Made by a program: the position numbers and the translations under genes
The notes under the pieces: model-generated
What the model was told of the DNA's origin: nothing
Seen by the model: only the letters and a program-made list of their open reading frames with translations
Database searches by the model: none
Source of the DNA: Selaginella moellendorffii
Taxonomy: Eukaryota; Plantae; Lycopodiophyta
Reading direction: 5' to 3'
Assembly: GCF_000143415.4 (NCBI RefSeq)
Contig: NW_003314279.1
Location: forward strand, 1,478,457-1,542,456
DNA length: 64,000 bases
Part shown: positions 39,973-45,219 of the stretch, piece after piece
Layout of the letters: each line of letters opens with the position of its first letter
Position numbering within the stretch: the stretch's first letter is position 1

Positions 39973-40387
39973 ATGGCAGCTCCAGGGAAGGCTTTGCTTA
40001 CTGCTGGCCTTGCCGCGGTGGGCGGCATTGTCACGCTTTCGCTCATCTCCACCGTCTCACTGCGAGCATTCAAAGCTGTCGTGGATAAAAACCGGGTAAG
40101 CGGTTTACGGCTCTTCTCGTTTGACGTGGTTTTTGATCATTTCCAGAGAAAGGTTGCACCGCCCTGCCAAGTTTGCAAGGGGAAAGGATTTGTTCCATGC
40201 AAGCTCTGCAAAGGCAGCTCCACCGTTAGCTGGTCGCCATTGTTTGATCCGGTCTTCATCAAGCCTTGCGTCTGCCCAACCTGCGAAGGCAACAGGTAGC
40301 TACTCGCATCTTGATCGATTTCTTCTCACCATTGCTTTGTCCAGAGTACAACGTTGCCTCAATTGCATTGGCAATGGCTTCGTCTAG
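39973..40387 (+). CDS. Small DnaJ-like zinc-finger protein with N-terminal hydrophobic segment, 3 exons
   Basis: CQVCKGKG, CKLCKGS, CPTCEGN|R and CLNCIGNG; no J domain. Confidence 0.88.
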
Positions 40388-40612
40388 AAATACTTTAACT
40401 TTGAGCGTGCAGCGTGTGAACAAAAGTGGAAGTGGAAACTTTTTTTTCTTTTCCATTTGTTTTTTTTTTTTTTCCTTTTCTTTGGTAGATCGTTTTACAT
40501 CGTTTCAGCTTGCATGCAGAGAACACGTGGCCATCTATTCTTGAGCCAAATGGTAAGTGCCCGAGGTCTTTATAGTGTCTTGTTGCGAGTTTTAACTCCC
40601 CTCCTTGATTGA

Positions 40613-42836
40613 ATGGGAGCCTGCAGTATTGCATTCTTCTCAACTTTGAGGAGACGGGGCGTTGTTTCCAAGCTCGGGAGGGCTCCAACGTTTTACGTGG
40701 TAAGGAGCCAGTTTCTTCAAACTATTCGTTTCTTCACGGCTCTTCTTCTAGTGAACGCAGAGTAGGATATCATCAATGGCTAAAGAAGCAGCAAGCGCCG
40801 AGGCTGTGGCTAATGTCCCCGGCCTCCGGCATACTGTGTGGGATCAGGACCAGCAGCTTCCGAAGTATCCCCGGATCGCGAAAGACGAGTCCGCTGATGT
40901 TGTGGTCGTGGGCGCTGGTATTGCTGGCATGAATGTTGCCTACAATCTTATCAAGGAGGGGATGTCTGTTATACTACTGGAAGGAAGGACTAGAGGTTTG
41001 TCCTTTTCGTGCTCTTTTTTTTTTCTTTTTATTTCTCGCATTTTGTCCTTGTGCTTGACGAAGTGTTGTTCAGGTAGTGGACAAACAGGGAGAACCACGG
41101 CTCACATTATGCCCTGGAATGACGACTTCTATTATATGCTAGAGCAGCAGCACGGTGCTCAGGTGGTTAAACATGTGGCTGAAAGTCACAGAAGTGCGAT
41201 CGAATGGGTTGCCAACACTGTTCAGGAGGAAAAGCTCGACTGCCATTTCAAACGCCTGGATGGGTATCTGTTTCCGTGCAATGAATCCTCTACTGAGCAC
41301 GATAAGTTACAGAAGGTTCGTGTATATACTGCTACGAGCTAGTTCAAAACTGACACAGACTTTATGTATTACAGGAGTTTGAGGCTTGCAAGAAATTCGG
41401 ATTTGATAACGTGGAGCTGGTGGACTTGGGTGGTGATCCTTCGGTCGGCAAGATTCACAAGGCACTGCGATTTCCCGACGCAGCCGAGTTTCATCCTCTT
41501 ATGTAAGCAGTGTTCACAAAGCAGTTTCTATAGTGTTGACGAAGCCTTTTTTTCTCAGGTATATAAACGGATTGGCCGAAGCATTCGTTCGTCGGGGTGG
41601 TAAAATTTACGAAATGAGTAGAGTGATGGAGATAGATGGAGGAAGTCAAGTTAAAACAGCGGACGGCGTCAGTGTTAGCACTGGAGCTGTGGTTGTGGCA
41701 ACGAACTCCCCTTTGAACCATGACGTGCTCGTGCACGCACGCCAGGCAGCCAGCCATTCGTATGTTGTAGGCTTGAAAGTTCCTAAAGGCTCTGTCAGGT
41801 ATTGTTTTGCTTTTGCTTTTGTCTCATTCCCCAGACACTAGACATTTTTTACTATTTGCTTCAACAGGACAGCCGAGTGGTGGGATACTGATTCGCCTTA
41901 TCATTATGTGCGGCTGGAAGAGAAAGATGGCTACGACGTTTTGATTGTTGGCGGTGGTGACACAAGCACTGGAATGAAGCCTTCCGAGTACAAGGATACT
42001 TACGGGGAGCTGGCCAACTGGGCTCGAGCGCGTTGGACAAGCGCTCAAGAAGTTCTTTACACATGGACAGGACAGGCAAGAAAACAATGTACCACTGGTT
42101 TCGATGACTCAATCTTCCCTCGCAATACAGGTCTTTGAACCGGCAGACAAACTGCATCTTATCGGATTGGAGCCTCTGGAGTCCCTCAAAGGCAGCAATC
42201 AGTACATCGTGACAGGTTCGTAGTCGTTCTTATGCTTCTCTCTTTCCAAGTTGAGATGTCTGGTATAGGTGATAGCGGCCAGGGAATGACAGGAGGAACT
42301 ATCGCGGGGATCCTCATCAGGGACCTCATATTGGGACGGCCGAATCCATGGGCTGCTGTCTATAGTCCAAAGCGGTTGCTGCCGCTGGACGTGTCGACAA
42401 TTAAATCTGCGGTGGAAGAAGCCAATCACACGTTCCAGGTAGATACACGAGGCTGACTTCTCTGTGGCTAAAATGCTACCATGCAGGGATTGAAAGATAC
42501 CATTCCTTTCTTAGGAACGGACAGTGTGGACATCGAAGATCTCCAGACGAGTCACGGAGCTGTGATCCAGACCGGATTGCACAAAGTTGCTGTTTACAAG
42601 GACGGCAATGGAAGAGTTCACCGCCACTCCGGTACATTTATCTATCGAAAAGAGAATTAAATTCCTTCGCCAACTTCGTTTATATGTTTGCTGCAGCCGT
42701 ATGCCCACACATGAAGTGCATTGTGAAATGGAATCCTGTTGATAGCACATTCGATTGTCCCTGCCATGGATCCATTTTCGACCCTTACGGCAAAGTCATC
42801 AACGGCCCAGCAAAGGCCGATCTTTTTGAGATCTGA
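40613..42836 (+). CDS. FAD-dependent (DAO-family) oxidoreductase fused to a C-terminal Rieske [2Fe-2S] domain, YhfW-like
   Basis: DVVVVGAGIAG, GSGQTGRTTAH, VVVATNSP, WTGQ|VFEPAD, TGDSGQGMTGGTIAG and Rieske CPHMKC...CPCHGS. The core starts at ATG 40776; an upstream exon 40613-40699 splices in frame. Confidence 0.92.
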
Positions 42837-42892
42837 GAGGTGGAACGAGAAAGCTTTCGTTTAATGGAAAAAGAGATTCTCGTTTTCGCATA

Positions 42893-45219
42893 TTAGTTGT
42901 TCCCTGTCCTTTCTTCCATCCTTCGGTCCCAGTCGGCAGCATCGTAACTTTGCTCTAGCAAATCCTTCTCGGTTGTGTAAACAATGCGGTCCTTCCCTAT
43001 GATTGTTCTTTCGGCTTGCCGCCGCGCACTACGTAGCTGTTTACAGTGGAAAGGACAGGGTGAATGAGAGCACTCAGCAAAGTTTAGGAAAGATACCTTC
43101 TCGCGCAAGGTCGCGTCAGGAGCTCTCAGGCGCAGCGCTCTCTCCTTTCTCGCCAGGTTACGCCCCTCGATCTTGGTGTTTTTCTGTTGGACTTGAAACC
43201 ACCGGAAGATCGGGATCGCGAAGAAGGCTACCGTGTAGGCCTGTTCAGCTGCGTGTTGGATGGAAGCAAAATACTGTTTCTATATTACCTGTAGCACTGG
43301 GAATGCATTTGAAACGAACTGGAGGAGCCCTCCCATTTGAGCAGTGATGGCAGCGTCCCTGGAAAGACAAAGTTCGCGAGTTATAATTGGAAGAGTTTAC
43401 ACATTAACTGAAACTGTACTTTAACAAGCTACCCAGTGTCAAGACTCCGAGTAGATTGAACGCTCCTAGCGCAACAACAAGAGTTTGGTCTGTTTGCTTG
43501 GCTCGGCTGTGTAAAGCACAAAAAGAAAAAAAGAACACTTAGACAAGAGATGAGATACAACCACACACACCTGAAAGGAAGAGGAGCTTCTTGGAGATAC
43601 TGGAGCCTGTCACCGTTGTGACTTTTCCAAGCTTGATTGGCTGCAGTGCGTTGCAAAGATGGGAAGCGATACACGATGTTTCCCTGCAAGGATTGACGTT
43701 GCTAAAACGACGCAGAATATCAGAAAGCTTACTCTAGCATCGACTTCAGGTTGGCCATCGAATCGTAAGAGAACTGGCAAAACAAACGACTCATCGTCCT
43801 GCCAAACCAAGACAGAATAAAAAAGAGAAAACAGAATAAAAAGCGTTGAAAACAAAACAGCGTACCTTGTTGTTTTCATCCAAGGCGGAGACATCTAAGT
43901 AAGGTGCAAGCTCTTCTGCAGTTACCACGCCACCTTTAGCAGCAATTTCTTCTCCAATCTGGAGATGCAAAACGTAATCTACTTTAGAACAAAAAACGAC
44001 TCATAGCACCCTCAAATACGAACATTTAAGAGTTTCTAGGAGTGACTCTTACCGCCTGCCACCGAACTTCGTCCAGTCCTTCATTGGGATCAGGGTCTCC
44101 AAATACGAACGAGAACACCTGCAAAAGAAACAAAACAGAAAACGTTAGCAACGACTCCGATCTCTAAAGGTATGCCACGCACAGATTCAAGGAAATTCAT
44201 GCCATCTGTTCTTCTCTTCCTCCTTCTATAATAGTAAGGGTCCCAATACCTGCAGAGTTAGTTAGCTCTCTCTTCCTTGCAAAATCGCGACTACCAAAAC
44301 AAGTCGAATGGACTGACGTAAAATGAGAATCCACTTCCGCGTGAGCTATAGCCACCTCGATTATTTCGATTGTCATCTTCACTGCAGACGATTTTCACTC
44401 CAAATATTTCAGAACAATCGTATCAAAAGGAGAAAACAAGAATAAACAACACCAACCTCCGGGCAGACGAAAGCAGCACAAAGATCGATGTGTAAACAAT
44501 CACCAGAGATGCAATAAGTGTCGTTCCAAACGAGACGCGTATCAAGTACTCCGCTCCAGCCTACCAAGAGCCAGTTAAAAGTCTTGTAGAAAACCAAAGG
44601 AAATCACACACACCTTAAGTTTGCTCAAGGCTGGTTCGATCTTGAGCCGGAAAGATTTCGCCAGCAAATTCGATCTATAGTCCTTGGAAAACACGTAAAG
44701 CACGTCTCCTTCGTCCGAGACCTGGCACGGTGGCAGCACGCAAAGTGAGAAAAAAAAAAAAAAAAAAAAAAATCAAAGAAGAAAAGATCATCCATGATCC
44801 TACAAACAAACCTCTAGAAATCCTCCAGTATCAGCAGCAAGAGCTTGCAAAGCGCTCTGAGCCTCGCTAACTTTGAGCCCGGCATTGGTCGCAACATCCC
44901 CGACTGTCACTCGTCCACCCAGCGTATCAATCGCTTTCATGGTCCTCTCCCTCACAGATGGAGCCAACCTATCAGTCTCGATTTGCTCTCCAATCCGGAG
45001 GCCCGACCCGGCCGCTCTACATTCCAGCCGAATCCTCCGAAACAAGCTCGTTCCAAGCTCGCCTCTCCTCCGGCCTCCAATGATCACCACACCCAAAACA
45101 TCCCCTCCTCCTCCTCCTCCATTCGCTGCTCTAGCCACCGGCGTCCTGTTCCTGGAATGGACTGCGTAATCCACGCATCCCTTGCACGAGACGAGGTAGC
45201 CGCATTGAATTGCCGCCAT
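42893..45219 (-). CDS. Conserved uncharacterised chloroplast membrane protein, At5g03900-like
   Basis: Transit peptide, then LGGRVTVGDVATNAGL...LQALAADTGGFLE|VSDEGDVLYVF, VFSFVFGDPDPNEG, GGVVTAEELAPYL and FVLPVLLRFDGQPEV. Confidence 0.88.

Follow-up and report, generated by a model that had tools for sequence, protein, structure and literature searches.

The 64,000-nucleotide stretch of Selaginella moellendorffii DNA analysed here (the window) carried on its plus strand the gene LOC112348921 of RefSeq, with a coding sequence at positions 40776–42836 for a protein of 525 amino acids. The RefSeq protein of this locus (P0157), which begins MAKEAAS, was retrieved by a word-indexed search with an alignment of the window exons and full-length matches; it showed 96–100% identity with each window exon, and the full-length analyses were run on this RefSeq copy, not on the joined window exons. 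A ten-exon splice model from 40613–40699 to 42697–42836, with eight GT-AG introns and one GC-AG intron, kept the frame open throughout, and contained 559 codons counted from the ATG at 40613 or 525 from the ATG at 40776, with zero internal stops. Coding exon 1 (40776–40995; this and all following features on the plus strand) contained the start methionine and the GxGxxG FAD-binding motif VVVVGAGIAGM, matched positions 1–31 of the Pfam DAO profile (E = 9.8e-8), and showed 97% identity with P0157 residues 1–73. Coding exon 2 (41074–41315) contained the GSGQTGRTTAH motif and the family-invariant residues H84, D90, D91, and Y93, and coding exon 4 (41559–41798) encoded the second part of the FAD domain (Pfam DAO positions 151–207, E = 1.2e-6). 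The WWDTxxPYHYVR family signature lay in coding exon 5 (41868–42075), and W282, T284, Y288, H289, Y290, and R292 of this region were invariant columns in an alignment of 27 sequences (alignment A2). Coding exon 7 (42269–42438) carried the TGDSGQGMTGGT motif, the end of the DAO domain and a linker helix; coding exon 8 (42487–42631) encoded the first half of the Rieske beta-sandwich, and coding exon 9 (42697–42836) the Rieske loops CPHMKC, CPCHGS, and GPA followed by the TGA stop codon at 42834–42836. Coding exons 3 (41375–41502) and 6 (42131–42215) were defined by the splice model, the RNA joints and the homologue alignment. When placed as separate rows, the nine coding exons were collinear with full-length homologues with no gaps at their borders, the GC-AG junction included. 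The gene structure derived from the window is that already modelled in RefSeq.

RNA data were consistent with this structure. About half of the words sampled from 40400–43000 were present in 20 runs from eight studies, a proportion expected for spliced RNA. Contigs from four runs, one per study (X1, X4, X6, and X12), were aligned to 40300–43300, and all eight coding introns, together with a leader intron at 40700–40760, were spliced out in 4/4 runs; the joint between coding exons 8 and 9 (E9–E10 in the ten-exon numbering) was likewise seen in all four. The joint 42071>42127 was ambiguous by 5 nt, within which the sole canonical pair was GC..AG, placing a phase 0 intron at 42076–42130 whose joint was also found in 4/4 runs. 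About ten short introns including this GC-AG intron had been expected from the sequence-only reading; the transcript contained ten, of which eight interrupt the coding sequence and the other two the 5' leader. Single 3.3-kb contigs from X6 and X12 spanned every coding exon, which indicated that the DAO and Rieske domains are encoded together on one transcript; separate transcripts for the two domains, named earlier as a finding that would refute the sequence-only reading, were thus not seen. These two contigs continued into a convergent minus-strand neighbour, a feature ascribed to an assembly join. The flanking genes were spliced plant genes. The window gene is a nuclear, spliced, and expressed gene.

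The position of the start codon was analysed from the 5' leader. Leader exon 1, at its minimum extent (40488–40552), contained upstream ATGs at 40515 and 40550 that open a uORF, and was followed by a GT..AG intron (40553–40626) that was spliced out in three of the four studies (X1, X4, and X6), the upstream side of the joint 40551>40626 being 51–64 nt long in these runs. Leader exon 2 (40627–40699) was followed by the second GT..AG leader intron (40700–40760), and its sequence was presequence-like and in the frame of the coding sequence, with no ATG once spliced. The ATG at 40613, from which the sequence-only reading had started the protein, lies inside the first leader intron and was therefore removed in those three studies; in the fourth, the X12 contig ended at 40621, downstream of that ATG. 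In the main frame of the spliced leader, a stop codon at 40542–40544 was followed by no ATG until 40776, and the uORF from 40515 or 40550 terminated 10 nt upstream of it. From the intronic position of ATG 40613, the leader stop with no intervening ATG and the RefSeq methionine, we assigned the coding sequence to 40776–42836. The supported start is ATG 40776, and the presequence-like exon 40627–40699 is 5' UTR in the transcripts seen. A longer protein translated from ATG 40613 and bearing a short organellar presequence was also considered, because 40627–40699 and 40761–40775 together form an open, in-frame, basic and Ser/Thr-rich segment without acidic residues, and because many homologues have real N-terminal extensions of 59–100 amino acids. 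However, this ATG was spliced out in three studies and uncovered in the fourth, the RefSeq model begins at 40776, a 34-codon open frame is expected by chance about once in five, and a presequence-bearing form is already supplied by a separate Selaginella paralogue; we therefore consider the longer protein very unlikely. With the start at ATG 40776, the window copy would lack a presequence and is probably cytosolic.

In an exon-wise Pfam scan, the DAO profile (PF01266) was matched in order over coding exons 1, 2, 4, and 5 (profile positions 1–31, 37–100, 151–207, and 248–309), and the Rieske profile (PF00355) was matched in the last exon (E = 1.9e-9); PF01266 was also precomputed on full-length P0157. 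The last exon, CPHMKC...CPCHGS...GPA, contained the CxH...CxxH ligands and two extra cysteines, and the ligands C482, H484, C500, and H503 were invariant in the 27 sequences of alignment A2. The earlier description of an intact DAO-family flavoprotein with a C-terminal CxH...CxxH Rieske domain was thus borne out by Pfam order, motifs, and open frame. The best PDB and NCBIfam matches of the Rieske exon were to cytochrome b6f PetC; NCBIfam gave generic FAD and PetC matches only, with no family-level name, and a profile search of the PDB found no member of the family among solved structures. Of the 126 family rows, 112 had both disulfide cysteines and 116 had the GPA loop. The Selaginella Rieske domain resembled PetC and AioB (b6f/bc1 and arsenite oxidase) in its CxHxxC, CxCHGS, and GPA elements (E = 1e-12 to 1e-17), and differed from them in having neither a membrane anchor nor a hinge and in being fused to a flavoprotein. 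Judged by its sequence motifs, with both disulfide cysteines present, the module is of the bc1/b6f/arsenite-oxidase type. Two residues past the Ser of CPCHGS, nearly all family rows had Phe (SxF), whereas bc1/b6f proteins have Tyr. From established mutagenesis, a Tyr to Phe change at this position implies a somewhat lower potential.

An AF2 model of P0157 built with the 27 aligned sequences had a pLDDT of 88.8 and a pTM of 0.89. Its top Foldseek matches were all amine/amino-acid flavoenzymes, with target-normalised TM-scores of 0.7–0.8 at 16–20% identity: glycine oxidase (4ysh), D-arginine dehydrogenase, opine dehydrogenase (7fgp), the proline dehydrogenase beta subunit (1y56_B), L-amino-acid deaminase, and sarcosine oxidases. 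A structure search with one DAO exon as the query gave no useful match among solved structures. Over residues ~38–420, the best profile and fold matches were 1y56_B (L-proline dehydrogenase beta of Pyrococcus horikoshii), 7fgp, and the glycine oxidase ThiO (4ysh and 1ng3), all FAD enzymes catalysing the oxidation of a C-N bond in an amino or imino acid. Identity with these proteins was 16–20%, similarity to characterised DAO-fold enzymes at the sequence level was confined to the FAD motifs, and the family-specific WWDTxxPYHYVR signature was absent from them. Two of them, 1y56_B and 7fgp, work with a separate Fe-S subunit, whereas the FAD-Rieske family carries its Fe-S module in the same chain, as a fused Rieske domain.

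The same two-domain protein also occurred in bacteria. In a prokaryote scan using one genome per species, the best 80 loci, from many phyla, were retained, and these aligned to query residues ~16–522 with 38–47% identity (E = 1e-101 to 1e-137); a Gemmatirosa homologue had 525 amino acids and the DAO and Rieske domains. A look-alike search of the Atlas also found DAO plus Rieske proteins in Ascomycota, archaea, Actinomycetota, and Bacillota, including a Bacillota cluster of 509 amino acids. The YhfW-type architecture proposed for the window gene was upheld, as the DAO FAD domain with a C-terminal Rieske domain found here corresponds to that of Bacillus subtilis YhfW, a putative FAD-linked oxidoreductase that is described as carrying a Rieske domain at its C-terminus and whose function is given as unknown (PMC7317962). 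The Selaginella protein and YhfW share the two-domain layout and a similar size, a likeness drawn from the described architecture and not from sequence; unlike YhfW, the Selaginella gene is spliced, nuclear, and placed within a monophyletic green clade. On the basis of its domain architecture, the window gene belongs to a YhfW-like family of single-chain FAD-Rieske oxidoreductases. Competent cells of B. subtilis showed strong induction of yhfW, the expression of which tracked that of the spore protein gene sspD, while a yhfW mutant showed decreased TCA-cycle and amino-acid pools and induction of nadABC (PMC7317962). We regard the effects of the mutation on the TCA cycle, amino acids, and NAD genes as indirect.

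The distribution of the family was examined first by exhaustive HMMER searching with the natural ORF 40776–41339, which comprises coding exons 1 and 2 read through their in-frame intron; this gave 2,900 matches at E <= 1e-3, of which the nearest named were from Cryptomeria japonica, Closterium, Chara, and Chlorokybus. A 5.8-billion-cluster collection was searched twice, once with the alignment of window exons and full-length matches and once with the Cryptomeria orthologue as the query, and the best 120 matches of each search were evaluated. Those obtained with the exon alignment included chlorophytes (Coccomyxa, Myrmecia, Elliptochloris, Parachlorella, Micractinium, Nannochloris, Gonium, Edaphochlamys, and Chlamydomonas schloesseri), streptophyte algae (Chlorokybus, Mesotaenium, Klebsormidium, Chara, Closterium, and Spirogloea), and bryophytes (Sphagnum, Ceratodon, and Riccia). 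The vascular plants among them were the ferns Adiantum and Ceratopteris, Selaginella, and the conifer Cryptomeria, and bacterial sequences ranked below the green matches in the best-120 list, with 46–49% identity. With the Cryptomeria query, the nearest non-self matches were ferns, Sphagnum, and Selaginella (55–59% identity), and no other seed plant was found among the best 120. The Cryptomeria japonica copy lay on a 934-Mb chromosome record and grouped inside the land-plant clade. No angiosperm appeared among the best 120 matches of either search, in which annotated and assembled proteins were covered; widespread angiosperm orthologues, the other finding named earlier as one that would refute the sequence-only reading, were thus not encountered. 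A restriction to seed-free plants, suggested earlier, did not hold, in that Cryptomeria has an orthologue and the gene occurs in many chlorophytes; the architecture is found in Ascomycota as well. The best 120 matches of both searches also lacked C. reinhardtii and the two proposed knockout hosts, Physcomitrium and Marchantia.

A quick IQ-TREE analysis was carried out on 129 rows, 50 of them green. All 50 green rows fell into a single clade (SH-aLRT 100), whose stem measured 0.78 substitutions per site and whose inner branching order was near that of the species tree. Within it, a land-plant clade (SH-aLRT 98) comprised the window gene, Cryptomeria, ferns, mosses, and Riccia, and a separate clade B (SH-aLRT 100) comprised the Selaginella paralogue P0173 and four transcripts. 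Intron positions were mapped by exact protein-to-genome matching and counted as shared when they fell in the same alignment column with the same phase. All eight coding introns of the window gene were shared with both Sphagnum and Selaginella paralogue B, six of the eight with Klebsormidium, and one, the GC-AG position, with Coccomyxa. This GC-AG intron position was kept in Sphagnum, where the donor is also GC, and in paralogue B, Klebsormidium, and Coccomyxa. The pattern of intron sharing indicated a long-resident nuclear gene and no recent import.

A bacterial source, by recent horizontal transfer or through contamination of the assembly, might be suspected because the identity with bacterial sequences (38–47%) was near that with the most distant green homologues of alignment A2 (43–46%), and because the family is abundant in soil bacteria. 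However, the gene has ten spliceosomal introns and spliced transcripts in four studies, its intron positions are common to a moss, the paralogue, and a streptophyte alga, its flanks are spliced plant genes, and the green sequences are monophyletic on the 0.78 stem and branch like the species tree. These observations refute recent transfer or contamination. The description of the gene as bacterial-type thus stands for its YhfW-like architecture and fails as a statement of recent transfer, given green monophyly on a long stem and introns common back to Klebsormidium. An ancient acquisition or differential loss, as offered by the sequence-only reading, accords with green monophyly, shared introns, and patchy retention. 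The phylogeny with bacterial and green homologues that had been proposed as a check supported the unity of the green sequences (SH-aLRT 100) and placed their bacterial sister with weak support.

The sister of the green clade was Bacteroidota-rich, at an SH-aLRT of 81. The green gene could instead derive from the cyanobacterial ancestor of plastids by endosymbiotic gene transfer, and not from another bacterium. In an AU test on 64 rows, a tree in which the green and two cyanobacterial sequences were constrained together was not rejected (delta lnL 5.9, p = 0.399), the gene occurs in chlorophytes and streptophytes alike, and many members carry plastid-like presequences. In the free tree, however, these cyanobacteria grouped with Acidobacteriota and the Bacteroidota-rich group remained the green sister; the best 80 loci included just two cyanobacteria, each from the Nostocales, and red algae and glaucophytes were not seen among the holders. 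A plastid origin is therefore possible but rather doubtful. We propose that a single entry into the green lineage would have predated the split of chlorophytes and streptophytes, and that the present introns were probably gained before Klebsormidium diverged. Many algae would then have retained the gene, as would mosses, a liverwort, lycophytes, ferns, and at least one conifer; it appears to be missing from angiosperms in the collections searched.

Selaginella paralogue B (P0173; SELMODRAFT_424962, 569 amino acids) showed 40–64% identity with the window gene and had a Ser/Thr- and basic-rich, transit-peptide-like N-terminal extension. N-termini in the green clade were bimodal, being either 10–27 amino acids long and bacterial-like or 59–100 amino acids long, poor in acidic residues and rich in Ser/Thr and Arg/Lys. 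Pairs of short and long forms were found in Selaginella, Chlorokybus, and Spirogloea, the window gene representing the short form.

For the catalytic reaction, we suggest that the N-terminal two-thirds of the protein, with its predicted glycine-oxidase/sarcosine-oxidase/proline-dehydrogenase fold, takes two electrons from the substrate onto FAD, and that the C-terminal Rieske [2Fe-2S] domain may pass them singly to an external acceptor. Such single-electron transfer to an external acceptor would make the enzyme a dehydrogenase linked to that acceptor and not an oxidase that reduces O2. Other DAO-fold amino-acid dehydrogenases use a 2Fe-2S partner, among them the proline dehydrogenase complexes of Pyrococcus, opine and D-hydroxyproline dehydrogenases, and HcnABC, and electrons leave arsenite oxidase through its Rieske cluster for cytochrome c or azurin. 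This electron path is the best reading, partly by analogy with the DAO-fold dehydrogenases that have separate 2Fe-2S subunits and with arsenite oxidase. We know of no obvious high-potential acceptor in the plant cytosol. The substrate may be a small amine-, amino-acid-, or imino-acid-like compound; since identity with the modelled relatives is 16–20% and sequence similarity is confined to the FAD motifs, this class is a guess, and some DAO-fold enzymes oxidise C-O rather than C-N bonds. Among 125 ORFs adjacent to the bacterial homologues, which fell into 112 Pfam families each found at most three times, there was no conserved gene neighbour. DUF892 was considered as a clue to the substrate because it lay within 4 kb in 11 of the 80 loci, but it was adjacent in 3 of the 125 ORFs and was rejected. 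Bacterial copies were scattered beside genes for DUF892/YciF, BON, Ku, DJ-1, topoisomerase IB, and SDR proteins.

Electrons might also flow in the opposite direction, with the Rieske domain acting as a built-in ferredoxin that feeds the flavin of a reductase or flavin monooxygenase. Rieske domains do donate electrons in oxygenase systems, and the automatic JGI name pairs 'glycine/D-amino acid oxidase' with 'nitrite reductase/ring-hydroxylating ferredoxin subunit'. However, the disulfide cysteines, the Ser that follows CPCHG, and the GPA loop mark the cluster loops as bc1/b6f-type, and the fold of the flavin domain matched dehydrogenases and oxidases and not PHBH-type monooxygenases. Loops of the bc1/b6f type are associated with high potentials, unlike those of ferredoxin-like donors. 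We consider reverse flow unlikely. The explanation that we favour as a whole, and hold to be reasonably probable, is that of a YhfW-like dehydrogenase in which electrons would pass from the substrate through FAD and the Rieske cluster to an acceptor, and which would have entered the green lineage once, long ago.

A more specific idea, which we think quite improbable, is that of a redox enzyme of stress or dormancy that would transfer electrons from an amino-acid-derived metabolite through the Rieske cluster to a high-potential acceptor, might be kept as cytosolic and organellar pairs in algae and non-flowering plants, and might have become dispensable towards the angiosperms. Weak hints in this direction were the competence induction of yhfW and its tracking of sspD, the scattered stress-type neighbours in bacteria, and the bimodal N-termini.

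We found no publications on the plant or algal FAD-Rieske family, and the sole functional study found was that of B. subtilis yhfW. As far as our searches show, the literature describes neither the conservation of the intron set and of its GC-AG member, nor the A/B paralogy, nor the distribution. The family is catalogued but uncharacterised, and is of moderate interest. For plant biology, the gene is another redox gene that is invisible from model angiosperms and by itself opens no long-standing question; its green branch appears to have persisted for about a billion years before flowering plants lost it. The single-chain FAD-Rieske family as a whole is large, extending over bacteria, archaea, fungi, and the green lineage, with no member of known substrate. 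Because metabolomics and localisation are tractable in plants and algae, a eukaryotic branch with cytosolic and organellar forms could aid the discovery of that substrate.

The 5' leader of the FAD-Rieske gene (window 40488-40775) contained two introns and a uORF, which started at ATG 40515 or ATG 40550 and ended at a TAG codon (40763-40765), leaving 10 nt between its stop and the main ATG at 40776. The main frame of the leader was open for 32 codons and had a presequence-like composition. Approximately 100 nt away from the leader lay the 3' end of the upstream neighbour (window 39973-40380, plus strand), whose small protein product has a hydrophobic helix at its N-terminus and zinc-finger repeats of the CxxCxGxG type. 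Its Pfam matches to DnaJ_CXXCXGXG, BSD2_CRD, and GRXCR1-2_C were weak. A loose RNA end at 40342 in this neighbour was compatible with a short last intron. On the other side, a convergent minus-strand gene (window 42840-43300) had an intron at 43037-43096 (CT..AC) in all four RNA runs, and because the 3' ends of the two genes closely abut, the assemblers joined the FAD-Rieske and minus-strand transcripts in 3.3-kb contigs.

In 11 of the 80 bacterial loci (e.g., L007, L030, L032, L038, and L058), a DUF892 (YciE/YciF-type) gene was found within 4 kb of the homologue, often directly upstream and on the same strand. Genes for topoisomerase IB, a Fet4-type iron permease, BON, Ku, DJ-1, and SDR proteins also recurred at low frequency.

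The orthologue of the chlorophyte Coccomyxa subellipsoidea (L085, AGSI01000007.1) had 12 introns, one of which measured 4.7 kb. Eleven of these were at positions with no streptophyte counterpart; therefore, the intron sets are largely independent gains in the two green branches. In Cryptomeria japonica (LOC131039572/SUGI_0491660), RefSeq isoforms X1, X3, and X4 (P0151, P0001, and P0152) lacked a counterpart of window exons 41559-42215, part of the substrate-binding region, whereas the GenBank model P0175 retained most of the matching stretch. The missing stretch could be due to alternative splicing, to incomplete annotation of a very large conifer gene, or to decay. Among the best 120 matches of both searches, there was no protein from Physcomitrium patens, Marchantia polymorpha, or Chlamydomonas reinhardtii; their relatives Ceratodon, Sphagnum, Riccia, C. 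schloesseri, and Gonium were present among these matches, and the gene may have been lost in the three model species.

The second Selaginella paralogue, P0173 (L084, S. moellendorffii GL377635.1:942547-946745), carried a transit-peptide-like N-terminal extension of 59 amino acids. Its gene shared all eight coding intron positions with the window gene and had one extra intron within the presequence. P0173 and four transcripts (P0002, P0159, P0160, and P0162) formed clade B, which was separate and well supported. In Spirogloea muscicola, there were two tandem pairs, P0166/P0180 (s20:406024-415246) and P0169/P0176 (s6:1269219-1278577), each combining a gene with a short N-terminus and a gene with a long one, and Chlorokybus likewise had one gene of each form. 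Cytosolic/organellar pairs seem to recur.
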